Shown here: positions 2 through 56,511 of the stretch, in pieces
Layout of the letters: the number at the start of each line of letters is the position of its first letter
Position numbering within the stretch: position 1 is the stretch's first letter
IMG/VR virus record: IMGVR_UViG_3300013094_000017
Coordinates: 62,001 to 126,000 of that record
Length of the DNA: 64,000 nucleotides
Reading direction: 5' to 3' (one strand)
Notes under the pieces: generated by a model
Told to the model about the DNA's origin: nothing
What the model saw: only the letters and a program-made list of their open reading frames with translations
Database searches by the model: none
Position numbers and translations under genes: made by a program

Positions 2-343
2 ACGAGATTTAAACCAGATTGGCGTCATTGGAAGAAATTAAACGCAAAAGATTCAGGTGGTGATCAGTTTAGTGATTGGGTTCCTCGTAATATATTGTAC
101 TTCAATCAATTCATTAAAGAATTGTTTAACACCCAGACTAAAGAAGAAGCGTTTGAGATGATTCAACAGGCTCGTCCATTCTTAACAAGTTTAGAAGGTG
201 CAAGGCTACAAGGTGGACCTGCTCAAAATACATTTACTAATTTATTTGATGTTGAAGAAATAACTACAGCAGAAGAAGTAGACTTAGAAAATCCAGACGA
301 TGACGAACTACGTGCATTAGAACAAGGACTAAATGATGAATAG
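2..343 (+). CDS. C-terminal part of a gene truncated by the window edge; context suggests possibly a DpdA/TGT-like transglycosylase
   Basis: The frame is open from base 2 (TRFKPDWRHWKK...WVPRNILYFNQF...) to TAG at 343, so the ORF-track start at 95 is not the true start. The identity is inferred only from its position next to deazaguanine genes; no catalytic motif is visible. Confidence 0.35.
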   Translation, partial: TRFKPDWRHWKKLNAKDSGGDQFSDWVPRNILYFNQFIKELFNTQTKEEAFEMIQQARPFLTSLEGARLQGGPAQNTFTNLFDVEEITTAEEVDLENPDDDELRALEQGLNDE

Positions 344-494
344 ATTAAATGAATTAATTCAAAGACAAACTGAGTTAGAAGAACAAATTCGTACAGGTAA
401 GAGTAAGTACTTAGATGATGCTAACTGCGGCAAAGCTGAACAAGAATTAATGATTGTTACTCGTTTAATAGAAGATATCAAAAATGCAGCGTGA
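333..494 (+). CDS. small hypothetical protein (53 aa)
   Basis: MMNRLNELIQRQTELEEQIRTGK...IEDIKNAA*. Fills the gap and overlaps both neighbours; AAGGA upstream; below the ORF-track length cutoff. Confidence 0.6.
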   Translation: MMNRLNELIQRQTELEEQIRTGKSKYLDDANCGKAEQELMIVTRLIEDIKNAA

Positions 495-1029
495 TTATAA
501 TACAGGTGTAGCAGATTCAGTAATATTCTTTATCGGTGACGAGATTGAACAAACTCCTGCATACGGATTACGAACATTATTTGTTGTAGGTGTTCACGAG
601 TCCAATGACATTCTAAAATTATTAAACACAAAACTTGCCCACAGCAACATTCAACATATCTATTTTGGGGCTAATCAGAGCTTTCCTAATCCGGACATAA
701 ACAATGCGATTGTTTGGAAAGAATGGGAAGATATGATTATCGCCTGTCTAGAAGCAGGTTATTGGTGTACTCTAGATTTAGATGTACGCTGTGCTGAAGG
801 ATTAGTAGAAGGTCCATTGGTAGAAAATCGTAGATTTATTCCACAGTTAAGTGTAAAGATTCCATACTTGACACAGTTGGGATATAATGCTACAATTAAA
901 TTAGACGACAAAGGATTTGAGGCAAGTAATCCCGGCGTCTGGTGTCATACATTACATTCATTAACTACTAGAGATTCATTCACAAGTTGGGATGAATACG
1001 GTAAAGACGAGATAATTAAACGTGATTAA
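484..1029 (+). CDS. hypothetical protein in the deazaguanine cluster
   Basis: 181-aa ORF overlapping its neighbours; no motif recognised. Confidence 0.75.
   Translation: MQRDYNTGVADSVIFFIGDEIEQTPAYGLRTLFVVGVHESNDILKLLNTKLAHSNIQHIYFGANQSFPNPDINNAIVWKEWEDMIIACLEAGYWCTLDLDVRCAEGLVEGPLVENRRFIPQLSVKIPYLTQLGYNATIKLDDKGFEASNPGVWCHTLHSLTTRDSFTSWDEYGKDEIIKRD
868..896 (+). promoter_or_regulatory. internal sigma70-type promoter upstream of the DpdL-like gene
   Basis: TTGACA-17 nt-TACAAT inside the preceding CDS. Confidence 0.5.
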
Positions 1030-1411
1030 TAAACGAATTTGGGTAACCTTTCAAAAAGAAGGCATTCATTGCTATCCTGCGGCAGCAACTGACCCTAACC
1101 TTAATACTGGAGATGCATATGATGTATCGTTTCTTGCTAGTCCTCACCGCCACATTTTTCATTTCAGGGTGTCAATCAGTGTGTTCCATAACGACAGGGA
1201 CATCGAATTCATCCAGTTCAAACGGTGGCTTGAAACCATGTATGTGGGTAGCGGTGCCACTTTAGAACTAAATTATAAGAGCTGTGAGATGATCGCAGAT
1301 GATCTTTACAAAGAGATCGCTCAAAAGTATCCTAATCGTGATGTTTGGATAGAAGTATCCGAAGATGGCGAGAATGGGTGTTATCATGAGTACATTAGTA
1401 CTCGTTCGTAA
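1022..1411 (+). CDS. dpdL: QueD-like T-fold protein, DpdL type (putative CDG decarboxylase)
   Basis: LASPHRHIF matches LxxxHRHxF rather than the canonical QueD CxxxHGH; SCEMIA and VSEDGENG are QueD-fold features; lies near folE and queE. Confidence 0.7.
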   Translation: MINKRIWVTFQKEGIHCYPAAATDPNLNTGDAYDVSFLASPHRHIFHFRVSISVFHNDRDIEFIQFKRWLETMYVGSGATLELNYKSCEMIADDLYKEIAQKYPNRDVWIEVSEDGENGCYHEYISTRS

Positions 1412-1437
1412 ACTGTCACAATCTAAGGAGATTTACC

Positions 1438-1677
1438 GTGGCTAATCCAAAATGGCTAAACAAATATCTAACAATAAAGCCAGAAGTACATAAGATCTAT
1501 GATGATCTTGATGCGTGGTTAAACTATTGCAGGTTTAACTTAACCAAGTTTGATCCAGCGGATCTATACAAGTCACCAGCTTGTAAAGAATGGCTAGAAA
1601 AACGCCGTCGTCGTCAGCAATGGCAACAACGTAATGGTCAGACCAGCAATGGTTATCAAGGTAAGAATCCACGCTAG
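1438..1677 (+). CDS. hypothetical protein
   Basis: 79 aa, GTG start with AAGGAG RBS, basic tail. Confidence 0.7.
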   Translation: MANPKWLNKYLTIKPEVHKIYDDLDAWLNYCRFNLTKFDPADLYKSPACKEWLEKRRRRQQWQQRNGQTSNGYQGKNPR

Positions 1678-2501
1678 GAACTGTGAGTATATTGTTCCAT
1701 TAGTTGAGATAGGGTAATATGGCATTTAGTATTTTTGATAGAATTATCTAAATGCCACAACATACGCAGATTTGTCCAATGCCCTATAACCTCAGGAGAG
1801 ATTCCTTGTTTGAATCCTTCCTCTACAGAAAATATATGATCTAAATGGTATTTGTATCTTGCTCGTGGTAAGTTACTAGGGTTGATTTTATAATAATGGG
1901 TATGGTAAGATTTAGCAGTAATCTTCTTTACAGCAAGTCTATAAAGTTCTAATTCGCTACGATGCTCGTCACTTACCCAATCACCTGTAGAAATACGAGA
2001 TTTTCTAATTTTAGCAGTTACATCTTTTGATTTAGAAGGATTATCTACTCCGTATTTTTCTATACAGGTTTCCTTGTGTTTGTTTTTTACCTGTTCAGAT
2101 TTGAATGGGTTGTCTACTCCATATTTTTCTATACAGGTATTTTTTACTGTATTCCTAAATTCAGTAGATTGAGAGGCAAACTCTGTTCCGTATTTTGCCA
2201 AACAAGCGGCTTTGTATTTTTTCAAGAATGCTGGATTACGATTCCTGCAAGAAGAAGAGCAGTTTTGGGTATACCCGCTCCGGAGTCCGGTAAATCTTAA
2301 AGGGTTAACACGGCATACTGGACATAATATCGGAATGACAGATCCTTCTAAATATAATTCGTGAAATGCTTTTTGAAACAACGGCCATTCTGAAGGATAT
2401 TCTGTTAAACAAGTTCCAATATAGTTCTTGATTATAGGTCGTAAATCTGTTATTTTATTTGGATAAGTTTCTATTAACTTTTTTATTTCATTTTTAGTCA
2501 T
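1674..2501 (-). CDS. free-standing HNH-type homing endonuclease with CIEKYGVDNP repeats
   Basis: CPVC...CSSSC zinc knuckle, three KYG repeats, C-terminal HLDHIFS...NLRML...N; antisense to the surrounding operon. Confidence 0.8.
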   Translation of the reverse strand: MTKNEIKKLIETYPNKITDLRPIIKNYIGTCLTEYPSEWPLFQKAFHELYLEGSVIPILCPVCRVNPLRFTGLRSGYTQNCSSSCRNRNPAFLKKYKAACLAKYGTEFASQSTEFRNTVKNTCIEKYGVDNPFKSEQVKNKHKETCIEKYGVDNPSKSKDVTAKIRKSRISTGDWVSDEHRSELELYRLAVKKITAKSYHTHYYKINPSNLPRARYKYHLDHIFSVEEGFKQGISPEVIGHWTNLRMLWHLDNSIKNTKCHITLSQLMEQYTHSS

Positions 2502-2506
2502 AATAC

Positions 2507-2535
2507 TTGACTCTCAATAATAAGTAGTATATACT
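2507..2535 (+). promoter_or_regulatory. sigma70-type promoter for the glycosyltransferase gene
   Basis: TTGACT-17 nt-TATACT. Confidence 0.65.
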
Positions 2536-2543
2536 TATTTATA
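2536..2543 (-). promoter_or_regulatory. T4-type late promoter for the HNH gene
   Basis: Perfect TATAAATA on the minus strand about 35 nt upstream of the ATG at 2501. Confidence 0.65.
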
Positions 2544-2567
2544 CATTATGGCACGGAGGCTTACTTA

Positions 2568-3674
2568 ATGAAACCTACAATTTGGATTTTCTCGCTTGAG
2601 CCAATTGAAACCAGATATACAGCACAATGGCATAAACATATTCCAAAACTACTCAAGAACAACTTAGGAGATAAGTTTAATATAGTTCAGGTTGATGGTA
2701 TCCAGAAAGACAGCCAACTTACTCCGGGTGCTTTCTTAAACTTTTCAGATACTAACTATTGGAAAAGTTCGCAATTATGTAATTTTTTAGAGCATCATAA
2801 TAGAGGAGAAACTTCCACCGACGATCACATCCTTTTTACCGACGCTTGGAATCCTACGGTTATCCAACTCAAATATATGAAGGATCTGTTAGGCTTTAAC
2901 TGGACCTTACACGGTATGTTCCACGCGGGGTCATATGATCCTCAGGACTTCTTGGGTAGATTAATTGGTCCTGCGGCTTGGGTTAGAAATGCTGAGAAGA
3001 GCTTCTTTGCAGCCATCGATCACAACTACTTTGCAACTAGATTCCATATAGATATGTTTGTTGACAATCTACTAGAAAATGGAGTACCGCGTGAGAATCC
3101 GTGGGCTGATGAAGATAAAGCAAGTTTGCTTATGAACTATAAGATTGTACGTAGTGGTTGGCCTATGGAATATATGGAACATACCTTAGATATCTATAAA
3201 GGTATGCCCAAGCGCGATCTTATCTTATTTCCTCATCGTATCGCTCCTGAGAAACAGGTTGAGATATTTAGAGATCTAGCACAGGCATTACCGCAGTTCG
3301 AATGGGTTATTTGTCAAGAACAACAATTAACAAAGAACGAATATCACAATCTATTAGGTGAAGCTAAGATGGTGTTTAGTGCTAACCTACAAGAAACATT
3401 GGGCATTAGTATGTACGAAGGTGCATTACTAGATGCTATCCCAATGGTTCCAGACAGATTGAGCTACAGTGAAATGTTTGCTAATGTTTGGAAATACCCA
3501 AGTGAGTGGACAGAATCATGGGACAGCTATCTTACCCATAGAAAAGAACTATGTGAGCTGATCGTTGATTATATGGAAAATTATAACGAGTATGTTAAAT
3601 TTATTAAGCAACAGGCATATAGTTTAACCAAAGAGTTTTTCAATGCTGGACAATTATTAGAGAGATTAAAATGA
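2568..3674 (+). CDS. GT-B fold glycosyltransferase (GT4-like)
   Basis: FPHRIAPEKQ and ETLGISMYEG (E-x7-E nucleotide-sugar-binding motif). Confidence 0.8.
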   Translation: MKPTIWIFSLEPIETRYTAQWHKHIPKLLKNNLGDKFNIVQVDGIQKDSQLTPGAFLNFSDTNYWKSSQLCNFLEHHNRGETSTDDHILFTDAWNPTVIQLKYMKDLLGFNWTLHGMFHAGSYDPQDFLGRLIGPAAWVRNAEKSFFAAIDHNYFATRFHIDMFVDNLLENGVPRENPWADEDKASLLMNYKIVRSGWPMEYMEHTLDIYKGMPKRDLILFPHRIAPEKQVEIFRDLAQALPQFEWVICQEQQLTKNEYHNLLGEAKMVFSANLQETLGISMYEGALLDAIPMVPDRLSYSEMFANVWKYPSEWTESWDSYLTHRKELCELIVDYMENYNEYVKFIKQQAYSLTKEFFNAGQLLERLK

Positions 3675-4441
3675 AGATTGGAATTATCGGATTAGGATTC
3701 GTAGGTGGTGCTGTTAAGGCAGCGCACGATTTAGTAGGTATTGAAACAGTTGATGTAGATCCTCATAAGGGATTGCCAGCAACATTAGCTGATGCTAAAG
3801 CGTGTGATGCTATCTACATCTGCGTGCCTAGCCCTATTGGATCAGATGGTGCTTGCGATACCAGCATCTTAGAAAACGTTATGGAACAGCTAACAGATTA
3901 CACTGGCCCTATCATTAGTAAGGTCACTGCGCCACCTAGCGTATATGTTCGCTTACAAGAAAGTCATAAGAATCTTATTCATGCTCCAGAATTCTTAGTT
4001 GCGGCAACTGCTAACGAAGATTACATCAACGGTACTTATGCCATTATCGGTGGATATGAACCTTATGCTACTCAGGCAGAAGCGGCTATCTTGGCAGCGC
4101 AACGCCGAGTAACTAACATTACTAAGATCGGAATAGGCGAGGCAGCATTAACAAAATATGCTATCAATACATTCTTATCTACAAAAGTTATCTTTATGAA
4201 TGAGCTAAAGGCACTTGCTGACGCTGCTGGAATTGATTACAATGTAGTTAAAGATACTATTCAGTTTGATTCACGTCAGGGTAATAGTCATTTTGATGTA
4301 CCTGGTCCAGATGGTAAGTTTGGATTCGGTGGTGCTTGCTTTCCAAAAGATACTTCGGCATTATTAAAATACGCTGAAGGATTAGGAGTTGAGTTAAGTG
4401 TATTAGCAAGTGCTGTGGCGAAAAATAAAATCATTCGTTAG
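3671..4441 (+). CDS. UDP-glucose/GDP-mannose dehydrogenase family protein, lacking the C-terminal domain
   Basis: GLGFVG Rossmann motif, CVPSP, PEFL, catalytic GFGGACFPKD; only 256 aa. Confidence 0.85.
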   Translation: MKIGIIGLGFVGGAVKAAHDLVGIETVDVDPHKGLPATLADAKACDAIYICVPSPIGSDGACDTSILENVMEQLTDYTGPIISKVTAPPSVYVRLQESHKNLIHAPEFLVAATANEDYINGTYAIIGGYEPYATQAEAAILAAQRRVTNITKIGIGEAALTKYAINTFLSTKVIFMNELKALADAAGIDYNVVKDTIQFDSRQGNSHFDVPGPDGKFGFGGACFPKDTSALLKYAEGLGVELSVLASAVAKNKIIR

Positions 4442-4470
4442 TTGACAGAGCCTAAATAACCCTATATAAT
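4442..4470 (+). promoter_or_regulatory. consensus sigma70 promoter upstream of folE
   Basis: TTGACA-17 nt-TATAAT; the spacer also contains a late-like CTAAATA. Confidence 0.8.
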
Positions 4471-4514
4471 ATTATTAAACATGGCAATCCATCTGCCTTA
4501 TCATCGGAGATAAA

Positions 4515-5213
4515 ATGGTAGCAAAATACACACCAGTTAGCGAAACTATTCGCAACAACTTAAAGAAAGACAACAAACGTTTCTGGGCTGGAGATAACAT
4601 CTCAGAATACATCACAGAAGAAAACAAAGCCCTATTAATTGACGAAGCAACTCTAGCATTTGAAGGTGTGCTTGATACATTGTTAATTGATCGTGAAAAC
4701 GATCCTAACAGTCATGGTACAGCTAGACGTTTAGCCAAAATGTACTTTAATGAGATCATGGCCGGACGTTATGAACCTAATCCAGATGCTACAGCATTTC
4801 CAAATGACAGCGAAGATCGTTATGAAGGTATGCTAGTAGTTCGCAGTGAACTACGCAGTATGTGTAGTCATCATCACCAACCGGTGGCGGGGGTTGCGTA
4901 TATTGGGATTATTGCCGCTCAAAAGCTCATTGGTTTGTCTAAGTACACTCGTATTGCTCAGTGGTGTTCTCGTCGTGGTACTCTACAAGAAGAACTATGT
5001 AATGACATTGCTAGAGAGATTATGAAAGCAACAGGTAGTGAGGATGTAGCAGTTTATATAGAAGCCGAACACGGATGTTGCGTTAATAGAGGCATAATGG
5101 CACATTCGAGCTTAACCCAAACAACTGTATTACATGGTGCGTTTAAGAATGACTCAAGTACCAAAAAAGAGTTCTTTGATAATATCAAACTACAAGCAAG
5201 AAACGGCAAGTAA
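4515..5213 (+). CDS. folE: GTP cyclohydrolase I
   Basis: MCSHHHQP, IGLSKYTR, LQEEL, EAEHGC zinc and substrate motifs. Confidence 0.95.
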   Translation: MVAKYTPVSETIRNNLKKDNKRFWAGDNISEYITEENKALLIDEATLAFEGVLDTLLIDRENDPNSHGTARRLAKMYFNEIMAGRYEPNPDATAFPNDSEDRYEGMLVVRSELRSMCSHHHQPVAGVAYIGIIAAQKLIGLSKYTRIAQWCSRRGTLQEELCNDIAREIMKATGSEDVAVYIEAEHGCCVNRGIMAHSSLTQTTVLHGAFKNDSSTKKEFFDNIKLQARNGK

Positions 5214-5858
5214 ACTAAATCCATTCTCTCTCCAAGTTTTAGAGGAATCGATATTTAGGTGATCAATTTTCTTGCTTGCCCTACCATTGGTCACAGGGTA
5301 AGCATCTAAATTATTATAGATAGTGTTTAATGTCCATTCGGGGATATTTAGAACTTTGTGTATTTCTTTCTTAGTTTTGAATATGCCGACTGGAGTAATG
5401 AATTTGTCTTTCAAAACACGAGGCGGGATGAAGTCTTTGGCAGCTCTATTTGCTTTCCAAGAGTTTAATCGTTTTTCCTGTATTGTAGGATTTTTCATAG
5501 GATTATTAATGAGCATACGCAGACGAACTTGCTCAATAAGTTTGGGGGTAGAAAAAATGTTTTCTTTTCCTCGTCGATATCTAGGGCCATTAAACGCACT
5601 TGATTTATTGAAGAAGCCATAAGCGTGACGCATTTTAATTTCATCTTGGAAATTATCCTGCATTTTGATTAGAAGGCAATGACACACTCGATGTTCTTTA
5701 TAGGTTAAATCTACTAAATTAGTAGGATCGTTTGTTCCACCTAACGATTTAGGAATGATATGATGGCATTGATTAAATTTAGAAGATTTTGTTCTATTTT
5801 CATTTAATGCTCTTGTAATTATTCTATAATATGTTATACTATATTTGTTAGTAATCAT
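5190..5858 (-). CDS. HNH homing endonuclease (MobE-like N-terminus)
   Basis: HHIIPKSLGGTNDPTNLVDLTYKEHRVCHCLL; ATG at 5858 is preceded by GAGG; late-like GATAAATA at 5885-5892. Confidence 0.85.
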   Translation of the reverse strand: MITNKYSITYYRIITRALNENRTKSSKFNQCHHIIPKSLGGTNDPTNLVDLTYKEHRVCHCLLIKMQDNFQDEIKMRHAYGFFNKSSAFNGPRYRRGKENIFSTPKLIEQVRLRMLINNPMKNPTIQEKRLNSWKANRAAKDFIPPRVLKDKFITPVGIFKTKKEIHKVLNIPEWTLNTIYNNLDAYPVTNGRASKKIDHLNIDSSKTWRENGFSLLAVSCL

Positions 5859-5919
5859 AATACGCCTCATAAATTCTATATTATTATTTATCTGGTTGAT
5901 GCGAAAATAGAGGTATTAA

Positions 5920-6135
5920 ATGAACGAGAAGATTAAACAACTTGCTGAACAGGCTGATAATTTTGCTGATGATAAAATTCGGATGCCTGGAGAATATCAC
6001 CCAGATTGGCATGATGTGCGAGATGAAAAGTTTGCCGAGTTGATTGTTAAGGAATGTAGTAATTTCTTGAAAGATACATTGGACGATCATTTTGCGGCAG
6101 AACAGTTAGAAGAACATTTCGGAGTTGAAGAATGA
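5920..6135 (+). CDS. small phage protein (MNE-IK-LAEQA...EKFAELIV-EC...EHFGVE type)
   Basis: 71 aa with GAGG RBS. Confidence 0.75.
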   Translation: MNEKIKQLAEQADNFADDKIRMPGEYHPDWHDVRDEKFAELIVKECSNFLKDTLDDHFAAEQLEEHFGVEE

Positions 6136-6233
6136 ACACAACTGTTCTTAAGGGTGCATTTAAATCTGATCCAGATACTAAGAAAGAGTTCTTTGACAAT
6201 ATTAAACTTCAACAGGAATTTGCTCCAAGATGA
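6132..6233 (+). pseudogene. folE: displaced second copy of the folE C-terminus (33-codon mini-ORF)
   Basis: Translates MNTTVLKGAFKSDPDTKKEFFDNIKLQQEFAPR*, versus TTVLHGAFKNDSSTKKEFFDNIKLQARNGK* in the intact gene. Confidence 0.85.
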
Positions 6234-6466
6234 TAGGCGCTGACGTAGTATGGTTTGGTGTAGGATTAGTCTTTGGAATATTCTTTGGCCTTAACCTTTA
6301 CAATGATCGCAAGGCTAGTGATAAACAAAAGGCCTACGAACAAATAGATGAGCAGGTACGTAAAGATCTTATTCGCTATAAGAACATGAGCGAAAGTTTG
6401 TTAGAAGATGTTAAATTTTGGCGTCATCGCGCTAATACATTAAGAGATATAAAGGAAAAGAAATGA
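6230..6466 (+). CDS. small membrane-anchored hypothetical protein
   Basis: N-terminal hydrophobic stretch VVWFGVGLVFGIFFGL followed by a charged helix. Confidence 0.7.
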   Translation: MIGADVVWFGVGLVFGIFFGLNLYNDRKASDKQKAYEQIDEQVRKDLIRYKNMSESLLEDVKFWRHRANTLRDIKEKK

Positions 6467-6669
6467 CACCTAGCGTAGAAAATATGAAACAAGGAACCTG
6501 CGGTTGTGGACGCAGTTTAAGTGGTGATTGCGATGGCAGTCATGCTTTGAGTGAAGAAATGTGGCAGAATAAACTAGATCAATTAATTCGTGAAGAAAAA
6601 GAACTTAAAGACGAATTAGACGATGACGATATTGACGATAATCACAATGTTAGCAACCAAGGAGGTTAG
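6463..6669 (+). CDS. CDGSH iron-sulfur (NEET-like) domain protein
   Basis: CGCGRSLSGDCDGSH motif with an acidic tail. Confidence 0.8.
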   Translation: MTPSVENMKQGTCGCGRSLSGDCDGSHALSEEMWQNKLDQLIREEKELKDELDDDDIDDNHNVSNQGG

Positions 6670-6672
6670 TAA

Positions 6673-7020
6673 ATGAGTACAGGAATAAGTGTAGGTTATA
6701 AAGAATCAAATCGTTCAAATCGTAGAGAAACCCCAACAGGTAGAGGCATGTTAAAGAACTTAATTATCAAATGGGCAGATGCTATCTATCGTAATGAAAG
6801 CAATAAACTAACTACAATCGAAATGTCTGATCCGAGCATCAATAGCGATAAAGGTATTAACTTTAGTGTGTATAAAGCTAATGGTGGTATGGTAATCGAA
6901 ACACGGTTCTACGATGATAGTAAGGATCGCAATCGTCGTGGCTTATATGTTATTACAGAAGAACAAGATATGGGTCAAGAGATTGCTAAGATCATCACAA
7001 TCGAATCATTAAAACAATGA
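6673..7020 (+). CDS. hypothetical protein
   Basis: 115-aa ORF with GGAGG RBS. Confidence 0.75.
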   Translation: MSTGISVGYKESNRSNRRETPTGRGMLKNLIIKWADAIYRNESNKLTTIEMSDPSINSDKGINFSVYKANGGMVIETRFYDDSKDRNRRGLYVITEEQDMGQEIAKIITIESLKQ

Positions 7021-7358
7021 GTCAAATATTTCTCCCCGCTGGTGCATCTGCTAACAAGTCTGGTAATAATACCGTGATTGGTGGCGCTATTAACAATATT
7101 ACCATAGCAAATGGTGGTACAGGATATGGGGCTGGAAGCAACACTACATTTAGCGGTGCTGGTACAGCTGGTACAGTAGGACCGACAGGAACTTTTGGAT
7201 GGTCTTATACCGATCAACAGCACGAGTGGATGTTAGAATATAAACTCGATCCTATTAAAATGGGCCTGATGTGTGAAAAATTTCCAGCACTAGCTAAGAG
7301 TTGGAGTCAGTTTAAAATGTTGTATAATCTATGTAAATCGGAAGAAGAGAATGGATAA
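7017..7358 (+). CDS. hypothetical Gly/Thr-rich protein
   Basis: 113 aa; ATGA overlap with the previous gene. Confidence 0.7.
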   Translation: MSQIFLPAGASANKSGNNTVIGGAINNITIANGGTGYGAGSNTTFSGAGTAGTVGPTGTFGWSYTDQQHEWMLEYKLDPIKMGLMCEKFPALAKSWSQFKMLYNLCKSEEENG

Positions 7359-7872
7359 GAGACGAATCAGTTTTGAAGAATATCGAGGATATGTTGGCGC
7401 TATCTGCCGAGATATCACTATTAGCGATTGGATGCCTGATTATGTAGTAGGTGTTACTCGCGGCGGATTACTGGCTGCTACAATGATCAGTCATTACTTT
7501 AAGATCCCAATGCATACATTAAAAGTAGCCTTACGTGATCACGCAGACACAGAAAGCAATCTTTGGATGGCAGAGGATGCATACGGATACAACGGCGAGG
7601 TAGGTGATCAAGTTGCTAAAAACATTTTGATTGTAGATGATATTAACGACACTGGCGAAACACTAAACTGGATTATGAAAGATTGGCAAACTAGTTGCTT
7701 ACCCAGCGATGCTCGATGGAATCATGTTTGGAATCAAAATGTAAAGTTTGCTACAATTGTAGATAACTTAGATAGTGATTGCAAGGTTAAGATGGACTAT
7801 GTTGGTTTTGAAATTAATAAAGCAGAGGAAGATGTTTGGATTGATTTTCCTTATGAATCTTGGTGGGAATAA
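7351..7872 (+). CDS. type I purine phosphoribosyltransferase (Gpt-like)
   Basis: VGVTRGG, PRPP loop ILIVDDINDTGET, C-terminal WIDFPYE. Confidence 0.9.
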   Translation: MDKRRISFEEYRGYVGAICRDITISDWMPDYVVGVTRGGLLAATMISHYFKIPMHTLKVALRDHADTESNLWMAEDAYGYNGEVGDQVAKNILIVDDINDTGETLNWIMKDWQTSCLPSDARWNHVWNQNVKFATIVDNLDSDCKVKMDYVGFEINKAEEDVWIDFPYESWWE

Positions 7873-7886
7873 CTAAAGGAACTATT

Positions 7887-8606
7887 ATGGCTACAAAGAA
7901 ACAAAAAGAAGAGTTAATGGAAACACTTAAATTCACTCCACGTGAATATAAAATTGAAATTGGCGCATATGGTGGCGAAGTTTATTTTGGTACTGTAGAT
8001 CGCAAGATTTATGATTTCTTTAAAGAAAAGAAAATTGACATTGAAGAATATGCAAGTGATTGGGATGATGAGAAATGGGCCGATATCCCAGAAGACATGC
8101 GTCCATTTGAACCAGGCAATGCTTACGATTGTTCCAATCTAGCACATAACAGTGGCGCAACATTTGATGAAGGTAACACTGTTGAAGTCTATGATGAAAA
8201 TGGTGACAAAGTTTGGGAGTGTGTATTAACTACCGAAGCACTTGAAGCCGAAGGGGTTACTGTGGTATGTGATGAAGAAACCTACATCAGTGAACAGCCA
8301 GAAGGCACTGTGGTATTCTATGGTGCTCAAGGTGAAAAAGGTCTTCTATTTGGCAATGACTTTCCATTAACCTCACCATTTGATCCTAAGAAACTTACAA
8401 TTAACTATGGTGACTTCGATGGTTGGGAAATGGTTATCAGTGTGTTGTATGATGGCGAAGACATTGACAACTACAATCTAGACACTACAGGTAAATGGGC
8501 TGAATCTAAGTGGATCATTGTTGGAGACGAAGAAGTCTACGAAGGTGAAACTCGCGGCGATGAAGAAGATGAGGATGAAGATGAAGAGGATGACAACGAA
8601 GAATGA
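7887..8606 (+). CDS. highly acidic hypothetical protein
   Basis: Start moved to ATG 7887 (AAGGA RBS); poly-D/E tail. Confidence 0.75.
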   Translation: MATKKQKEELMETLKFTPREYKIEIGAYGGEVYFGTVDRKIYDFFKEKKIDIEEYASDWDDEKWADIPEDMRPFEPGNAYDCSNLAHNSGATFDEGNTVEVYDENGDKVWECVLTTEALEAEGVTVVCDEETYISEQPEGTVVFYGAQGEKGLLFGNDFPLTSPFDPKKLTINYGDFDGWEMVISVLYDGEDIDNYNLDTTGKWAESKWIIVGDEEVYEGETRGDEEDEDEDEEDDNEE

Positions 8607-8776
8607 TCCTTAGCAACTATGCCCACGAAAATAGAACAGCAAATGTTTGCAAACAGAGCGGAGAGTATGTTATAATGTGTTATGAAGATGGGCATTACAT
8701 ACGTTCAGAAATAGCATTAAGTGAAACATCAGCTGATGATATTGCAGAAGATTGGGTATTTAAAAGTGATAACTAA
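8603..8776 (+). CDS. small hypothetical protein (57 aa)
   Basis: MILSNYAHENRTANV...DIAEDWVFKSDN*; ATGA overlap with the previous gene; missing from the ORF track. Confidence 0.65.
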   Translation: MILSNYAHENRTANVCKQSGEYVIMCYEDGHYIRSEIALSETSADDIAEDWVFKSDN

Positions 8777-9038
8777 CAAAACACAAGAAGCATTGATTAT
8801 TCTGCAGGAAGAATGTGCTGAAGTAATACAGGCAGCTAGTAAAATATATCGATTTGGGCTAGATAATTCTCACAAATCAGGCCTTACCCAACGAGCTAAT
8901 TTAGAAATGGAAATTGGCGATATGCTGTCCCTGGTAGATATTTTAGTTGAGCAAGGTGTTCTAGACCTAAATAATTTAAACACTGCTAAATTAAACAAAA
9001 TTGAAAAACTTAAAATATGGTCAAAATTATATGAGTAA
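8766..9038 (+). CDS. mazG: MazG-like nucleotide pyrophosphohydrolase
   Basis: EECAE...EIGD (ExxE...ExxD); GTG start at 8766 avoids a long overlap with the upstream small gene. Confidence 0.8.
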   Translation: MITNKTQEALIILQEECAEVIQAASKIYRFGLDNSHKSGLTQRANLEMEIGDMLSLVDILVEQGVLDLNNLNTAKLNKIEKLKIWSKLYE

Positions 9039-9873
9039 AATTAAAGTAGCAGAGCTGTTTTACAGCATACAGGGCGAAGGTCGCTATATGGGAGTACCTA
9101 GCGTGTTCCTTAGAACTTTTGGCTGCAATTTTTCTTGTAGGGGCTTCGGTATGGGTAAAGGGCAATTGAGTGAAGAATACTTAACTGTTAATCCAGAACT
9201 ATACACAAAATATGATGAACTTCCACTAGTTAGTACAGGGTGCGATAGTTATGCTAGTTGGGATCCACGCTTTAAGCATTTAAGTCCAATGTTAGAGTCA
9301 GATGCTATTGCAGAAGCAATTGCAGATATGTTGCCTTATAAAGATTGGAATGACGAACATTTAGTTATCACAGGCGGCGAGCCTTTGCTAGGATGGCAAC
9401 GTGCTTATCCAGATCTATTAGATCATCCCAAAATGAAGAATCTAAAAGAGATCACATTTGAAACAAATGGTACTCAAGAATTATCACCAGAACTTAGAAC
9501 ATATCTACTCAATTGGCAAAGTGAAAACTTTGATAGAGAAGTAACTTTTAGTGTAAGTGCTAAATTAAGTGCAAGTGGTGAACATCCAGACGAAGCAATT
9601 AAACCTGAGATTGTGTGTTCGTATGAAGAAGCAGGTTATACATATCTTAAGTTTGTTATTGCAACAGAAGAAGATGCAGAAGAAGCATTAGAAGCCGCAG
9701 ATATCTATCAACAAAATGGGTTTACTGGTCCAATTTATCTAATGCCAGTCGGCGGGGTTGAAAGCGTTTATGCATTAAACAACCGTCGTGTAGCAGAATT
9801 AGCAATGAAACACGGCTTGCGATATAGTGATAGGCTGCAAGTTCCGTTATTTAAAAATGAATGGGGTACATAA
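9031..9873 (+). CDS. queE: 7-carboxy-7-deazaguanine synthase (radical SAM)
   Basis: ELFYSIQGEG, FLRTFGCNFSC...CDS, ITGGEP, FETNG, RLQ. Confidence 0.92.
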   Translation: MSKIKVAELFYSIQGEGRYMGVPSVFLRTFGCNFSCRGFGMGKGQLSEEYLTVNPELYTKYDELPLVSTGCDSYASWDPRFKHLSPMLESDAIAEAIADMLPYKDWNDEHLVITGGEPLLGWQRAYPDLLDHPKMKNLKEITFETNGTQELSPELRTYLLNWQSENFDREVTFSVSAKLSASGEHPDEAIKPEIVCSYEEAGYTYLKFVIATEEDAEEALEAADIYQQNGFTGPIYLMPVGGVESVYALNNRRVAELAMKHGLRYSDRLQVPLFKNEWGT

Positions 9874-10968
9874 TTGAGTTATCTATTTACATCAGAATCT
9901 GTTAGTGAAGGACATCCGGATAAAGTAGCAGATGCTATTAGTGATGCTATTTTAGACCTAGTTATGGTACACGAAGATCCAAGTATGCGGGTTGCTTGCG
10001 AAACTTTAGTTACTACTAATCGTGTTGTACTTGCAGGAGAGTATAAAAATGTTGCCCTACACAATGCGCAGATCGATAGTGCTGTAAGAAAAGTTATCAA
10101 AAATATTGGCTACGAACAAGAAGGATTTGATTGGCGTACAGTTGAGATCACTAACTTATTACATGCACAAAGCGCAGACATTGCACTCGGTACTGATAAC
10201 TTCGGAGCAGGCGATCAAGGACTGATGTTTGGGCACGCTACTAAAGAAACTCCGAACTATATGCCTGCGGCGATTTATTACAGCCATAAGATTATGGAAT
10301 ATTTGACAACAATGCGTAAAGGTGGGCAAACTTGGTTAGGTCCAGATGCTAAAGCACAGGTAACATTAAATTACATTGGTAATAAAGCTCGTTATGCTAC
10401 TAAGATTGTATGTTCAACTCAGCATAGTCAAGGTGTAGAAGTTGAAGAGCTACGTCCTGTAATTGAAACTTATATTAGAGAGTGTGTTCCGGAGATTATC
10501 ACAGATGCTACCGAATTTCTTATCAATCCTACTGGTCGTTTTGTCATTGGTGGGCCCGACGGTGATACTGGCCTCACCGGACGAAAAATTATCGTGGATA
10601 CCTACGGTGGCAGTTGTCCTCATGGTGGCGGTGCTTTTAGCGGCAAAGATCCTACAAAAGTTGATCGTAGTGCCGCTTATATGGCTAGGTACTTGGCTAA
10701 GAACATTGTAGCCAGCGGTCGCGCAAATGTAGCAACTGTTCAATTAAGCTATGCTATTGGTGTTGCTGATCCAATGAGTGTGTACATTGACTGCGATGGA
10801 AATTGCGAAGGCATTAGAGATTGGATAATTAAACATGTTGATCTAACTCCAAAGGGTATTATAGATAGATTTAATATGTTTCGTCCTATCTATAGTCAAA
10901 CTACTAACTACGGACACTTTGGCAAAGATTTTTTGCCTTGGGAAGCTGTAGATTTATTTAAGGTGTAA
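9874..10968 (+). CDS. metK: S-adenosylmethionine synthetase
   Basis: FTSESVSEGHPDK, GAGDQG, GGGAFSGKDPTKVDRS; TTG start directly after the queE stop. Confidence 0.97.
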   Translation: MSYLFTSESVSEGHPDKVADAISDAILDLVMVHEDPSMRVACETLVTTNRVVLAGEYKNVALHNAQIDSAVRKVIKNIGYEQEGFDWRTVEITNLLHAQSADIALGTDNFGAGDQGLMFGHATKETPNYMPAAIYYSHKIMEYLTTMRKGGQTWLGPDAKAQVTLNYIGNKARYATKIVCSTQHSQGVEVEELRPVIETYIRECVPEIITDATEFLINPTGRFVIGGPDGDTGLTGRKIIVDTYGGSCPHGGGAFSGKDPTKVDRSAAYMARYLAKNIVASGRANVATVQLSYAIGVADPMSVYIDCDGNCEGIRDWIIKHVDLTPKGIIDRFNMFRPIYSQTTNYGHFGKDFLPWEAVDLFKV

Positions 10969-10969
10969 T

Positions 10970-11458
10970 ATGAATATTATTCAAACATTATTTGAAAAAG
11001 TTACGGGCATTGATAAGATACGTGCTAAAGCGGCTGCAGAAGCAGAAGCGGCTATTCAATTAGCCCTAGAAGCACAAGCTGAGGCAAAAGCATCTTCATT
11101 AGCAGCAGAAGAAGCAAAGGCAGAAGAAGTCGCAGCAAAAGAAGCAGAGCGTATTGCTAAATTAACGCCAAAAGAACTTGCTACAGAAAAGAAAGAGCCT
11201 TACATTGCAGTATTAGATACCAAAGTAAATCCAGAGAATCCTCGTAATGGATTTTTTGAGCTTGATTGGAATGAATATTTTATCATGCAATTGAAAGAAG
11301 CAGGCTATTATGGTGAAACAGATGAAGAACTAGCAGATCGTTGGTTCCAAGATTTGTGTCGCAATATTGGTGCAGAATCAGGTGTAGATATGGATCGTAG
11401 AGGTGCAGGATACATTAATGTAAATGATTTAGGTAATGGTAAGTCAGAGATTAGTTAA
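10970..11458 (+). CDS. hypothetical protein with Ala/Glu-rich coiled coil
   Basis: 162 aa; C-terminal NGFFELDWN domain. Confidence 0.75.
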   Translation: MNIIQTLFEKVTGIDKIRAKAAAEAEAAIQLALEAQAEAKASSLAAEEAKAEEVAAKEAERIAKLTPKELATEKKEPYIAVLDTKVNPENPRNGFFELDWNEYFIMQLKEAGYYGETDEELADRWFQDLCRNIGAESGVDMDRRGAGYINVNDLGNGKSEIS

Positions 11459-12117
11459 TGTCAAGATTAACAGAGTGGCTCTACGGTATTCAACAACTAG
11501 GTTTACAAATTGATACAGTATATGATATTGGTGCCTGCGTAGGCAACTGGAGCCGCGAGATACAAGATAAAGTTTGCCCCAATGCAGACTTTATCCTGTT
11601 TGAAGCTAACCCTGCATATAATGAAATTTTATCTAATAGCAAATTCCGCTATTTCAATACAGTCCTAAGCAATCCCGGTAGAGAGTTTGTCGAATTCTAC
11701 AATGGAACAAACACCGGCGATAGTTACTATAAAGAAAATACCACAACATACGACAATCAAACAACTGTTAGATTGCTCTGCTCCACACTTGATGCTATAA
11801 TAAATGAATACAACCTGCCAATTCCTAATCTTATTAAACTTGATACACAAGGTTCTGAATTAGATATTTTAGCAGGGGCTGAATCTATTGTAGATAAAGT
11901 AGATTTAATGTATGTAGAATGTCCAATTATAAACTATAATATTGGAGCACCTAGCATACAAGATTATTTAGATTACTTTAAGAACAAAGAGTTTGTGCCA
12001 GTTGATTTACTTGAAACGCATCAAAACGAGAATATACTATTACAAGTTGATATTATGTTTATGAAAAGAGAAACCAAAGAAAGGATCTTAACTCCAACCC
12101 GTCAGGTAAGGATTTAA
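11458..12117 (+). CDS. FkbM-family SAM-dependent methyltransferase
   Basis: YDIGACVG, FEAN, TLD, IKLDTQGSELDILAG. Confidence 0.88.
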   Translation: MSRLTEWLYGIQQLGLQIDTVYDIGACVGNWSREIQDKVCPNADFILFEANPAYNEILSNSKFRYFNTVLSNPGREFVEFYNGTNTGDSYYKENTTTYDNQTTVRLLCSTLDAIINEYNLPIPNLIKLDTQGSELDILAGAESIVDKVDLMYVECPIINYNIGAPSIQDYLDYFKNKEFVPVDLLETHQNENILLQVDIMFMKRETKERILTPTRQVRI

Positions 12118-15789: not shown

Positions 15790-17043
15790 ATGTCAGTAAT
15801 GAAAGCAGAAAAAGTTAAGAAGCCAACAAAGACACGTGAGTATTCACCTGCTGAAAAGAACAAGATTATTGAAAAACTTGTAACTGCTCGGGTTGGGTTG
15901 CTATTACGACATCCTTTCTTTGGCAATATGGCTACACGTATGCAATTAATTGATGCAAGTGATTGGTGTAGTACACTTGCTACAGATGGTCGCAACTTCT
16001 ATTATAACAACGACTTTGTCAGCAAATTAAAGCCTAAAGAAGCAGAGTTCGGATTTGCACACGAAGTATTACATAACGTGTTTGACCATATGGGTCGTAA
16101 AGGTGACCGTGATCATCAATTGTCAAACATTGCCGCAGACTATGCTGTAAATCAAATTCTTAAAGATGAACGCATCGGTGAAGTTCCTAACTGGATCAAA
16201 ATTTTCCAAGACAATAAGTATCGTGGTATGAGCTACGAACAAATTTATGACGACTTGTATCAAAATGCCGAAAAGATCGACATTAGTTCGTTAGGCGAGA
16301 TGTTAGACGAGCATTTAGATGACGGCGAAGGTGAAGACGGTCAAGGCAACGGCGGCGACCAAGAAGGTAAGAGCGGTCGTCCTAAACTAACAGCAGAAGA
16401 AAAGAAAGCTATCCGCGATGAAATCAAAGAAGCTATGGTAGCGGCTGCTCAAAGTGCAGGTGCTGGTAAATTGCCAGCAGGTATCCGCAGATTAATTACA
16501 GACTTTACAGAACCGCAAATGGACTGGCGTGAATTGTTACGTATGAATATCCAAAGCATTATGAAAAGTAACTTTAGTTTTAGTCGTCCAAATCGTAAGA
16601 GCCAACATTCAGGTGCTGTATTACCAGGCATGACTAACGAAGAAACTATTGATGTAAGCGTAGCAATTGATATGTCAGGTAGTATCAGCGATAAGATGGC
16701 TAAAGACTTCTTAAGCGAAGTTAAAGGCATCATGGATGAATACGTTGACTTTAAATTAGACTTATGGTGTTTTGATACACAAGTTTACAACTATGCTAAA
16801 TTCTCAGGCGATACTGCTGACGAAATTATGTCATACGAAGTTAAAGGTGGTGGTGGTACAGACTTCGATGCAAACTACGAGTTTATGAAAGAAAACGAAA
16901 TTGAGCCAAAACGCTTTATTATGTTTACTGATGGATATCCGGCCGGATCTTGGGGGGACGAAAACTATTGCGAATCACTATTTGTTATTCACGGTAATGA
17001 TTCAATTATTCCACCGTTTGGGCAGGTTGCGTATTATAAGTGA
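15790..17043 (+). CDS. metallopeptidase + VWA domain protein (DUF2201-like), AAA+ partner
   Basis: ATDG, HEVLH (HExxH), MIDAS DMSGS, GGGGTDF, FTDG. Confidence 0.9.
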   Translation: MSVMKAEKVKKPTKTREYSPAEKNKIIEKLVTARVGLLLRHPFFGNMATRMQLIDASDWCSTLATDGRNFYYNNDFVSKLKPKEAEFGFAHEVLHNVFDHMGRKGDRDHQLSNIAADYAVNQILKDERIGEVPNWIKIFQDNKYRGMSYEQIYDDLYQNAEKIDISSLGEMLDEHLDDGEGEDGQGNGGDQEGKSGRPKLTAEEKKAIRDEIKEAMVAAAQSAGAGKLPAGIRRLITDFTEPQMDWRELLRMNIQSIMKSNFSFSRPNRKSQHSGAVLPGMTNEETIDVSVAIDMSGSISDKMAKDFLSEVKGIMDEYVDFKLDLWCFDTQVYNYAKFSGDTADEIMSYEVKGGGGTDFDANYEFMKENEIEPKRFIMFTDGYPAGSWGDENYCESLFVIHGNDSIIPPFGQVAYYK

Positions 17044-17632
17044 TTCCTAAACTGAAATCTTCATACAATTGTTCTTTGGACTTGTGAGAAGTTTTGCTTT
17101 TAGCATAGTTTTCTGTACAATGTACAAGACGAAGGTTAGTAATATCCGAGACAATATTAGCAGGTATAGAGTTTCGAAATCCGTCTGCTACACTATAGAT
17201 ATGATCAATATGCCATTCTCTACCTCGTAATCCTTGCGGATCTAACATACCTTTATGTCGATTGTACATTGTATCGGCATATTGATGACACCGATCTATA
17301 TACTGTTTTAGAGTTAATCCCTCAACAGAATAATCTTTGTGGTTATGATATTCATTCCAGTATTCTTTTTTGTTAGCTTTGATTTTAGCACGGGCTTCGG
17401 GTATATGAGCAGCATTAGATACTCCGTAACGTTCTTCCATAACTTGTTGACGTTTTTCTTTAATAGTAGGACTAGAACTAGCATTAGGTACCCCATATCG
17501 TTTAATAGAAGTTGCTTGCATCTTAGCCTGAACCGCCGGGCATCGTGCAGGAATTTTAGAGCATTTATGTTTTCCATTCCAGGTAATATAAGTAGCTTCT
17601 TGGCCGCAGTTATTTTCGCATAGTATTTTCAT
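17006..17632 (-). CDS. free-standing HNH-type homing endonuclease with RYGV repeats
   Basis: N-terminal Cys cluster, KRYGVPN/ERYGVSN repeats, HIDHIYS...NLRLV...N; same C-terminal domain type as 1674-2501. Confidence 0.8.
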   Translation of the reverse strand: MKILCENNCGQEATYITWNGKHKCSKIPARCPAVQAKMQATSIKRYGVPNASSSPTIKEKRQQVMEERYGVSNAAHIPEARAKIKANKKEYWNEYHNHKDYSVEGLTLKQYIDRCHQYADTMYNRHKGMLDPQGLRGREWHIDHIYSVADGFRNSIPANIVSDITNLRLVHCTENYAKSKTSHKSKEQLYEDFSLGITYNTQPAQTVE

Positions 17633-56486: not shown

Positions 56487-56511
56487 TAGATTGTTTATAA
56501 ATACATATATA

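Follow-up and report, generated by a model that had tools for sequence, protein, structure and literature searches.

Does the sugar-transfer enzyme that lies among the 7-deazaguanine genes of this jumbo phage act on the modified base, or does it serve an unrelated function? The DNA analysed, hereafter called the window, is a stretch of 64,000 nucleotides (positions 62,001 to 126,000 of IMG/VR record IMGVR_UViG_3300013094_000017), and it is 100% identical to a 259-kb IMG/VR jumbo-phage contig, designated L007. An earlier note, made from the sequence alone, had described nine genes in one co-oriented block (a DpdL-type QueD paralogue, a GT-B glycosyltransferase (GT), a UDP-sugar dehydrogenase, FolE, a PRTase, MazG, QueE, MetK and an FkbM methyltransferase), with no queC or queF. 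It proposed that a uronic acid or other oxidised sugar could be added to a deazapurine base and possibly O-methylated by FkbM using phage-made SAM, the alternative being decoration of virion proteins or of the host surface.

We first asked whether the genes are real, using Pfam, PHROG, NCBIfam and PDB searches, tblastn, profile alignments (hhalign) and structural models. The nine genes were all found where the note placed them (Table 1), and its observation is therefore confirmed, with four corrections. The block is not strictly co-oriented, since two homing-endonuclease genes on the minus strand interrupt it. The dehydrogenase is a 256-aa 'mini-UGDH', which keeps the catalytic Cys/Lys/Asn motifs but lacks the whole C-terminal UDP-binding domain (PF03720). 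QueD, which is needed to make 7-carboxy-7-deazaguanine (CDG), is absent from the 64-kb window, although it is present in 27 related loci. Finally, the note had suggested inspecting the upstream sequence for dpdA, and a dpdA-like gene is indeed present, cut by the left edge of the window. No QueC (PF06508) or QueF hit was found among the window ORFs that were scanned, as the note had claimed; on these ORFs, the pathway stops at CDG or a CDG derivative, as in phage phiST.

Table 1. Features of the deazaguanine block, in window coordinates
Position	Strand	Feature	Evidence
2..343	+	3' end (last 113 codons) of a 543-aa TGT/DpdA-like DNA transglycosylase gene; full gene at L007:6145-7776	tblastn with PA5oct EST35_0316, E 1.6e-11; family alignment with invariant DSGGxQ, D148, QG, HxLG and FD294CA; Atlas neighbours carry PF01702 (TGT) and PF23859 (DpdA)
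484..1029	+	Conserved 181-aa core protein, predicted alpha/beta fold	Present in 104 of 110 DpdL loci; model pLDDT 90, no significant PDB match; best match QueE at Z 6.4, below the noise level; hhalign against QueE negative; 766 family clusters in a library of 1.8e9 proteins
1022..1411	+	DpdL, QueD/PTPS paralogue and proposed CDG decarboxylase	LASPHRHIF motif; 58% identical to ACP17 DpdL (E 1e-36) and 33% to phiST DpdL (E 2e-8); family defined in PMC10516641
1438..1677	+	79-aa ORF, commonly between DpdL and GT in relatives	tblastn hits in 52 loci, at the same position
1674..2501	-	Homing endonuclease (DUF7487) inserted between DpdL/79-aa ORF and GT; not part of the pathway	PF24308; phrog_3339
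2568..3674	+	Predicted GT-B, GT4-like (probably retaining) glycosyltransferase, clade A	No Pfam hit; AlphaFold model pLDDT 91; Foldseek top hits glycogen synthase, BshA, MshA and PglA; EX7E motif at E284-E292, E284 invariant; best BFVD hit ACP17 GT
3671..4441	+	Mini-UGDH, NAD-binding and central domains only; start overlaps the GT stop codon (ATGA)	PF03721 and PF00984 only; aligns to residues 78-293 of the 450-aa chain 3gg2; GLGFVG and GFGGACFPKD present
4442..4470	+	Perfect 12/12 sigma-70-type promoter consensus in the 74-nt gap before folE	Promoter count in the region not above shuffles
4515..5213	+	FolE (GTP cyclohydrolase I), first step from GTP	PF01227, E 1.3e-40
5190..6212		HNH homing-endonuclease cassette (HNH gene 5190-5870, minus strand), followed by a duplicate of the folE 3' end at 6138-6212	Pfam HNH; self-tblastn
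7351..7872	+	6-oxopurine (XPRT/HGPRT-like) phosphoribosyltransferase	PF00156; PDB and NCBIfam purine PRTase hits; found in 41 related loci
8721..9038	+	MazG-like NTP pyrophosphohydrolase (weak match)	PF03819, 20.6 bits against a cut-off of 22; homologues before QueE in 10 loci
9001/9031..9873	+	QueE (CDG synthase, radical SAM)	phrog_2076, E 1.6e-55; Cx3Cx34C cluster motif; NCBIfam QueE models match below their cut-offs
9874..10968	+	MetK (SAM synthetase), accessory	All three S-AdoMet synthetase Pfam domains; after QueE in only 6 loci
10970..11458	+	Conserved 162-aa protein between QueE and the 5'-3' exonuclease	Found in 39 loci; homologues PA5oct 0324 and Phosso gp235
11458..12117	+	FkbM-family SAM methyltransferase	PF05050, 51.8 bits against 22.7; TIGR01444, 69.8 against 37.7; only in this phage's own contigs, L007 and L008

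For the DpdA-like protein, Pfam and PDB sequence searches were negative, and the identification is supported by the invariant catalytic motifs and by the Atlas neighbours. In DpdL, the LxxxHRHxF motif takes the place of the CxxxHGH motif of QueD, and L38, H42, H44 and F46 are invariant in the family alignment. Its comparison with the QueD family by hhalign gave a probability of 62% (E 7.7e-5) over 40 C-terminal columns, and there was no PF01242 hit. The GT model returned 397 PDB matches at E<=1e-3, the listed top hits being GT4/GT5-type GT-B enzymes; T4 AGT and BGT were not among the top 50. In the alignment of the 16 mini-UGDH family members, GxGxVG, PEFL, E..K..N and GFGGxCxPKD are invariant, and every member ends about 25 aa after the catalytic Cys, so that all are truncated in the same way.

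We then examined whether the GT is linked to the deazaguanine genes in other viruses. The core order DpdA-like, 181-aa protein, DpdL, GT was seen in about 100 IMG/VR loci, and the DpdA-like gene was present in 104 of 110. The GT lies next to DpdL in 51 of 51 unique DpdL-seeded loci with enough flank, and in 87 of 87 of all loci with at least 2.5 kb downstream of DpdL, a clustering far beyond chance. It should be noted that these counts come from related contigs and are not independent events, and that the loci sampled were those closest to this window's own proteins. The linkage survives five different gene orders in cultured phages, among them 181, DpdA, GT, DpdL, QueE in ACP17; DpdA, GT, DpdL in Pseudomonas phage PA5oct; GT, TGT, DpdL, QueE in X1; and DpdL, GT in Phosso. 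The module sits in the replication gene cluster, and no structural genes are nearby.

The sugar genes, in contrast to the GT, vary between lineages. Two GT clades carry mutually exclusive sets: in clade A, mini-UGDH (16 of 39 loci), GFO/IDH/MocA (21 of 39) and ADH (21 of 39); in clade B, a 4,6-dehydratase/epimerase (34 of 40), a DegT aminotransferase (30 of 40) and a methyltransferase, with UGDH and GFO both at 0 of 40. This cargo is inserted inside the core, between the DpdA-like gene and the 181-aa gene. On the DpdL tree, the GT clade changes about 8 times (at least 2 changes being forced by starred branches), but the GT is never lost.

The interpretation given in the note is thus supported in part. 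Its central inference, that the GT belongs to the deazaguanine pathway rather than to virion or host-surface decoration, is strongly supported by comparative genomics, and the dehydrogenase is linked to this GT clade. However, the dehydrogenase is not a canonical UDP-sugar dehydrogenase, and the same mini-enzyme accompanies QueE in Campylobacter phage CP220, which carries plain dADG; a UDP-uronic acid donor is therefore uncertain. Since FkbM is private to this genome and MetK is rare, O-methylation is at best a private decoration.

The best explanation, which we hold with moderate confidence, is that the block is the core of a phage DNA-hypermodification module producing a glycosylated 7-deazaguanine derivative, with a sugar that varies by lineage. 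What the analysis establishes is genomic only, namely gene identities, motifs and linkage, and the successive steps are grounded to different degrees. Established enzymology supports the conversion of GTP into CDG by FolE and QueE, with a QueD supplied from elsewhere in the 259-kb genome or by the host. From homology it is inferred that DpdL, together with the 181-aa protein, converts CDG to the base that is inserted (as the proposed CDG decarboxylase, DpdL would give 7-deazaguanine), and that the DpdA-like transglycosylase swaps this base for guanine in phage DNA. From linkage alone it is inferred that the GT adds a sugar, on DNA or on the base before insertion, and that the cargo genes determine which sugar; donor and acceptor specificity can only be inferred from the co-varying sugar genes. 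In this phage, the mini-UGDH would most likely oxidise a sugar CH2OH that is not presented as a UDP-sugar, for example after transfer, giving a uronic acid. More speculatively, FkbM may methylate the sugar, MetK would supply SAM, the PRTase would recycle guanine released by DpdA back toward GTP, and MazG would trim the dNTP pool. We found no report of such a base.

Published data on relatives agree with this view. PA5oct DNA resists enzymes with G in their sites and is hit by nucleases that sense hypermodified DNA (PMC12191111). ACP17 dpdL plus dpdA alone gave no dDG in E. coli, and the authors suggested that other enzymes may be needed (PMC10516641). In addition, ThyA (356 bits) paired with DHFR in the window argues against a hydroxymethyl-pyrimidine acceptor. 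On the other hand, there are no chemical data for any member of the clade, and 7-deazaguanine has no obvious hydroxyl to accept a sugar. The CDG decarboxylase activity proposed for DpdL is also unproven in the literature, where heterologous expression of the phiST and ACP17 genes gave no dDG. phiST (100% dDG) and RHph_I1_18 carry DpdL without an adjacent GT, so DpdL does not need one; the GT is acidic (pI 5.5) and not structurally close to T4 AGT or BGT; and CP220, with unglycosylated dADG, also has the mini-UGDH next to QueE.

Other explanations appear less likely. The DNA could carry plain 2'-deoxy-7-deazaguanosine or dCDG, with the GT and sugar genes acting on a replisome or virion protein, a host lipid or polysaccharide, or another base, and linked only because they share an early-gene block. 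phiST makes dDG with DpdL and DpdA3 and no GT; the GT is acidic and most like small-molecule or polysaccharide GT4 enzymes; and a distant GT homologue in PhiXhv-12 sits with GlmS and a BshB-like deacetylase, without DpdL. We consider this unlikely in view of the adjacency, kept through at least 5 gene orders in phages of hosts from different bacterial groups, of the position of the cargo inside the core, and of the absence of structural genes nearby.

A pre-replicative route, in which the PRTase converts the free deazaguanine base (glycosylated or not) to a nucleotide that is reduced, phosphorylated and incorporated by the phage polymerase while MazG removes dGTP, the DpdA-like protein being secondary or acting in repair, is more doubtful still. 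PRTase and the weakly matching MazG do lie inside the cluster, the ToyH and TubC PRTases use preQ0 or CDG in toyocamycin and tubercidin biosynthesis, and the ADG nucleoside was seen in the cytoplasm of CP220-infected cells (cited in PMC10516641). Yet the DpdA-like gene is nearly always present with all TGT catalytic motifs invariant, PRTase was seen in 3 of 40 clade-B loci (though the 10-kb flank limit may hide some), and salvage of the guanine released by DpdA explains it equally well. Least likely is a soluble glycosylated pterin or deazapurine, comparable to tetrahydrobiopterin glucoside or huimycin, acting on host metabolism. FolE, a PTPS-like protein and a GT4 enzyme resemble the BH4-glucoside pathway, and the BH4 glucosyltransferase 5zes is a structural hit at rank 23, but this match is no better than dozens of other GT4 enzymes. 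HuiG, with the GT4-type domain PF13439, N-glycosylates the 2-amino group of a 7-deazapurine (bioRxiv 10.64898/2026.04.15.718813). Against this reading, the DpdA-like transglycosylase is a core member, and PA5oct DNA is physically modified at G.

How does the module compare with described systems? The closest is the dDG system of Cellulophaga phage phiST (FolE, QueD, QueE, DpdL, DpdA3, MazG; Cui et al. 2023, PMC10516641), which shares a CDG-terminated pathway with no QueC, a DpdL with the LxxxHRHxF motif, a divergent DpdA that the Pfam TGT model does not detect, and a MazG-like gene, which is a weak match here. phiST has no GT, 181-aa protein, sugar-nucleotide genes or PRTase, and its DpdA3 is 259 aa long, against about 510-580 aa here, the two being only weakly alignable (hhalign 33%). 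The logic of a non-canonical base plus a GT-B enzyme, with a sugar that differs between lineages as expected in an arms race with restriction systems, recalls hydroxymethylcytosine glycosylation in T-even phages (T4 alpha- and beta-glucosyltransferases; arabinosyl-hmC in RB69-like phages). Here, however, the inferred base is a purine (deazaguanine), the GT is GT4-like, and no hydroxymethylase is present, ThyA and DHFR looking ordinary.

In vertebrate tRNA, queuosine, a 7-deazaguanine derivative already in a nucleic acid, is glycosylated to mannosyl-Q and galactosyl-Q by QTMAN/GTDC1 and QTGAL/B3GNTL1, QTMAN being a GT4-type GT-B enzyme; the sugar goes on the cyclopentenediol hydroxyl, a side chain that, with no QueC, QueF, QueA or QueG in the window, could not be made from the genes here. 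In huimycin and dapiramicin biosynthesis, HuiG and the O-methyltransferase HuiC act on preQ0, so that a GT4-type GT and a SAM methyltransferase decorate a 7-deazapurine made by FolE, QueD and QueE, and the exocyclic 2-amino group is shown to accept a sugar. Huimycin is nevertheless a secondary metabolite of actinomycetes with no DpdA, it needs QueC, and O6-methylation would be incompatible with base pairing in DNA. In CP220, G is completely replaced, reportedly through DpdA3; the phage has QueC* and makes the amide (dADG), and QueE is followed two genes later by a 256-aa mini-UGDH with the same domain truncation and catalytic motifs, but no GT of this family lies next to it, and the reported base carries no sugar. 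Finally, the HNH cassette in the window is followed by a 25-codon copy of the folE 3' end, 84% identical over 25 aa.

The plus-strand ORFs of the gene block match the list drawn up in the earlier note (a DpdL-type QueD paralogue, a GT-B glycosyltransferase, a UDP-sugar dehydrogenase, FolE, a PRTase, MazG, QueE, MetK and an FkbM methyltransferase), and its observation is confirmed, with four corrections described below. In DpdL, the sequence L-A-S-P-H-R-H-I-F fits the LxxxHRHxF motif that defines this family (PMC10516641), and the protein is 58% identical to the ACP17 protein tested in that paper and 33% identical to phiST DpdL. The glycosyltransferase (GT) ORF has no Pfam, PHROG or NCBIfam hit, and a phmmer search against PDB sequences found nothing. 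However, an AlphaFold model built on 44 homologues (pLDDT 91; alignments for the models contained no rows from GenBank loci) is a GT-B fold, whose best PDB neighbours are GT4/GT5 enzymes, namely glycogen synthase, BshA, MshA and PglA, and an E-x7-E motif is present at E284-E292. FolE, a purine PRTase, QueE, MetK and FkbM were confirmed, MazG only by a weak match below the Pfam cut-off, and, in line with the note, no QueC or QueF was found in the ORFs scanned across the 64 kb. In this QueE family, the radical-SAM cysteines are spaced Cx3Cx34C, with an insertion of ~34 residues between the second and third Cys, which differs from the CxxxCxxC and Cx14CxxC forms named in the NCBIfam QueE models. 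Megablast of the first 12.5 kb against GenBank phages gave no match. Coordinates are collected in the table below.

Coordinates of the features discussed (window positions, or positions in the fetched locus where a locus is named)
Feature	Position	Strand
3' end (last 113 codons) of the DpdA-like gene	2-343
Plus-strand ORFs matching the note's list	484-12117	+
DpdL	1022-1411	+
Homing-endonuclease gene	1674-2501	-
10/12 promoter match for GT and mini-UGDH	2507-2535
Predicted GT-B glycosyltransferase	2568-3674	+
Dehydrogenase (mini-UGDH, 256 aa)	3671-4441	+
Perfect promoter consensus, TTGACA-17-TATAAT	4442-4470
Probable homing-endonuclease cassette with folE duplication	5190-6212
HNH endonuclease gene	5190-5870	-
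Duplicate of the last 25 folE codons	6138-6212
QueE	9031-9873	+
Free-standing endonuclease gene	17006-17632	-
4270-aa ORF	28448-41260	-
Free-standing endonuclease gene	56491-57306	+
Free-standing endonuclease gene	57749-58195	+
Mini-UGDH, Campylobacter phage CP220 gp019 (locus L005)	8992-9762
DpdL-containing protein, Vibrio phage Bakedbeans gp176 (locus L120)	8212-9363
Distant GT homologue with GlmS-like and BshB-like genes, Xanthomonas phage PhiXhv-12 (locus L201)	4750-7984

The dehydrogenase matches only the NAD-binding and central domains of the UGDH family. It aligns to residues 78-293 of a 450-aa UGDH and stops there, and folE starts 74 nt later. The possibility that this 'mini-UGDH' is a pseudogene remnant was rejected: 16 homologues of 256-319 aa were aligned, of which all but the 319-aa C48C1 protein end at the same point, none extends into a UDP-binding domain, and all keep GxGxVG, PEFL, E..K..N and GFGGxCxPKD. 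The GT and mini-UGDH genes overlap by ATGA and have their own promoter match, while a perfect promoter consensus lies in the 74-nt gap before folE. The note had described the block as co-oriented, but homing-endonuclease genes interrupt it on the minus strand. One of them, the HNH gene, lies together with a 71-aa ORF between the end of folE and a duplicate of its last 25 codons (84% identical at the protein level), which looks like the footprint of a homing-endonuclease cassette inserted at the 3' end of folE. Besides the HNH gene, the window holds four more free-standing endonuclease genes (two DUF7487, one GIY-YIG and one SegE-like), one of which, the other gene interrupting the block, sits between DpdL and GT. 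Together with the HNH gene, this is an unusually high load of homing endonucleases in 64 kb.

QueD is absent from the window and may lie elsewhere in the genome or be supplied by the host; a search with a relative's QueD returned 80 other contigs, this phage's contig not being among them. The note had proposed to look upstream for dpdA, and a dpdA-like gene is indeed there. The window is 100% identical to the 259-kb IMG/VR contig 3300013094_000017, in which the truncated ORF at the left edge is a gene of 543 aa. This protein family has invariant DSGGxQ, D148, Q-G, HxLG and F-D294-C-A, which correspond to the substrate-binding and nucleophile motifs of TGT, and its language-model and structural neighbours carry PF01702 (TGT) and PF23859 (DpdA). 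A profile HMM of the family found nothing among PDB sequences.

We next asked whether the association between GT and DpdL extends to other phages. By tblastn, GT homologues were found next to DpdL homologues in the cultured PA5oct-like phages, ACP17, Phosso, X1 and BUDD, BCSR5 and BUCT-ZZ01. We then fetched 112 IMG/VR loci, seeded with either the GT or DpdL, and clustered all their ORFs. The recurrent order is DNA polymerase, clamp, DpdA-like, a 181-aa protein, DpdL, GT, then FolE, (QueD), PRTase, (MazG), QueE, a 162-aa protein and the 5'-3' exonuclease. A GT-family ORF is present in 87 of 87 DpdL loci with at least 2.5 kb downstream and, counting only unique DpdL-seeded loci, in 51 of 51; it usually starts within 1.4 kb of the DpdL stop codon. 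Loci that seemed to lack the GT by tblastn have a more distant member of about 400 aa at the same position. Cultured phages keep GT within one or two genes of DpdL or DpdA, despite different gene orders.

The GT family splits into two clades: clade A is at least 45% identical to the GT of the window, while clade B is about 22-27% identical to it. The clades come with contrasting neighbours, the three kinds of gene most typical of clade A not being found in clade B.

Genes neighbouring GT in the two GT clades (number of loci)
Neighbour gene	Clade A (n=39)	Clade B (n=40)
Mini-UGDH	16	0
GFO/IDH/MocA oxidoreductase	21	0
ADH-like protein	21	0
NAD epimerase/4,6-dehydratase	6	34
DegT aminotransferase	5	30
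326-aa methyltransferase	3	35

Some of this cargo sits inside the core, between the DpdA-like gene and the 181-aa gene. On a DpdL tree, the GT clade changes about 8 times (bootstrap range 6-9, at least 2 forced by well-supported branches, compared to 26 for shuffled labels), whereas GT is never lost; the tree rests on only 149 columns, so that its details are rough. Such a pattern, a fixed transferase slot with exchangeable sugar-nucleotide genes, is what one expects if the sugar is the variable end product of the pathway. Some clade-A loci (L025-L030 and L098 of the IMG/VR set) carry a 2OG-Fe(II) oxygenase, a ClpP-like protease or an extra radical-SAM protein inside the module, and the oxygenase could create a hydroxyl acceptor in those lineages.

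Other members of the block are not conserved. FkbM was encountered only in this phage's own contigs, and MetK follows QueE in six loci. The mini-UGDH is accessory and sits in three different positions. A 256-aa mini-UGDH with the same truncation and the same catalytic motifs lies two genes after QueE in Campylobacter phage CP220, in which G is fully replaced by dADG, with no sugar reported. This suggests that the mini-enzyme has a role in deazaguanine pathways beyond this clade, and this role may therefore not be sugar oxidation at all. Relatives annotated as UDP-glucose dehydrogenase also occur in Bacillus phage SP-15 and in many Microbacterium phages.

For the 181-aa protein, searches of Pfam, PHROGs and NCBIfam gave nothing. 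Its model is confident (pLDDT 90) but has no significant structural relative, although the family is large (766 clusters at 50% identity). Pairwise BLAST was negative when we asked whether it is a DpdA3 or the 'glycosylase' of Phosso. The idea of a cluster-less QueE paralogue was rejected as unproven, since the top VIA-align hits are QueE at Z 6.4, which is below the noise level of the method, and hhalign against the QueE family was negative. The long forms of the family were not found to be fusions with DpdL or with the 115-aa protein.

Published experiments provide some anchors. PA5oct resists restriction enzymes and is targeted by END nucleases that sense hypermodified DNA, including one that hits only G-modified phages, although the chemistry was not determined (PMC12191111). 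Phage phiST, which has DpdL and DpdA3 but no GT, has 100% dDG, while ACP17 dpdL plus dpdA expressed in E. coli gave no dDG, and the authors noted that other enzymes might be required (PMC10516641). The text of that paper does not mention a glycosyltransferase at all, and we found no report of a glycosylated deazaguanine in phage DNA in the literature searched, which did not cover subscription journals.

We consider a glycosylated 7-deazaguanine derivative in DNA to be the most likely product of the module, somewhat more likely than not. What the analysis establishes is the presence of the genes and their linkage; the biosynthesis of CDG rests on established enzymology, the roles of DpdL and of the DpdA-like protein are inferred from homology, and the GT step, including its donor and acceptor, is inferred from linkage only. 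The interpretation of the earlier note, that a uronic acid or other oxidised sugar could be added to a deazapurine base and possibly O-methylated by FkbM, is supported in part: the link between GT and deazaguanine is strong, whereas the uronic-acid and O-methyl details are weak. The acceptor is the weak point, because 7-deazaguanine has no hydroxyl. It might be the CDG carboxylate, the 2-amino group, as in huimycin, where a GT4-type enzyme does exactly this, or a group created by DpdL and the 181-aa protein. Since the TGT-type base-recognition residues are invariant, we infer that the base is inserted with a free Watson-Crick/N2 face, and that the sugar is added either at the C7 side or after insertion. 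The acidity of the GT (pI 5.5) is mild evidence against direct action on DNA, but the DpdA-like family is equally acidic. The loss of the UDP-binding domain fits a mini-UGDH oxidising a sugar that is not presented as a UDP-sugar, which is speculation. PRTase and MazG fit either salvage of released guanine and pool control, or a pre-replicative nucleotide route, and the two could not be separated.

We regard the module as a phage Dpd system which differs from that of phiST by the GT linked to DpdL. The known 7-deazaguanine DNA modifications (dPreQ0, dPreQ1, dG+, dADG, dDG, dCDG, mdPreQ1 and fdPreQ1) carry small substituents; none carries a sugar, and no glycosylated purine is known in DNA. If the module glycosylates deazaguanine, it adds a new chemical class of DNA base, could explain why dpdL plus dpdA alone failed in E. 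coli, gives a molecular basis for the restriction resistance and END-nuclease sensitivity of PA5oct, a candidate for phage therapy, and supplies three enzyme families of unknown chemistry (the 181-aa protein, DpdL and the mini-UGDH). A broader reading, possible but held more tentatively, is that hundreds of large and jumbo phages, including the cultured PA5oct, ACP17, Phosso and X1, carry glycosylated 7-deazaguanines as a previously unrecognised class of bases, the sugar being swapped between lineages by cassette exchange, with uronic or oxidised hexoses in one GT clade and amino-deoxy or methylated sugars in the other. This would be the purine counterpart of T-even hmC glycosylation, and would need new chemistry, from DpdL and the 181-aa protein to create the acceptor, and from a UGDH devoid of its UDP domain that acts on an already transferred sugar.

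Homologues of the core proteins were also encountered in other arrangements. In Vibrio phage Bakedbeans gp176, the DpdL domain forms the C-terminal third of a 383-aa protein, whose N-terminal ~260 aa match neither the DpdA-like family, the 181-aa family nor phiST DpdA3. In Xanthomonas phage PhiXhv-12, a distant homologue of the GT (25% identity) sits with a GlmS-like aminotransferase and a BshB-like deacetylase, without DpdL, which appears to be a different sugar pathway in 227-kb jumbo phages. Elsewhere in the window, the single ORF of 4270 aa sits among baseplate and tail genes, with gp25-like, gp53-like and T4 baseplate Pfam hits nearby.
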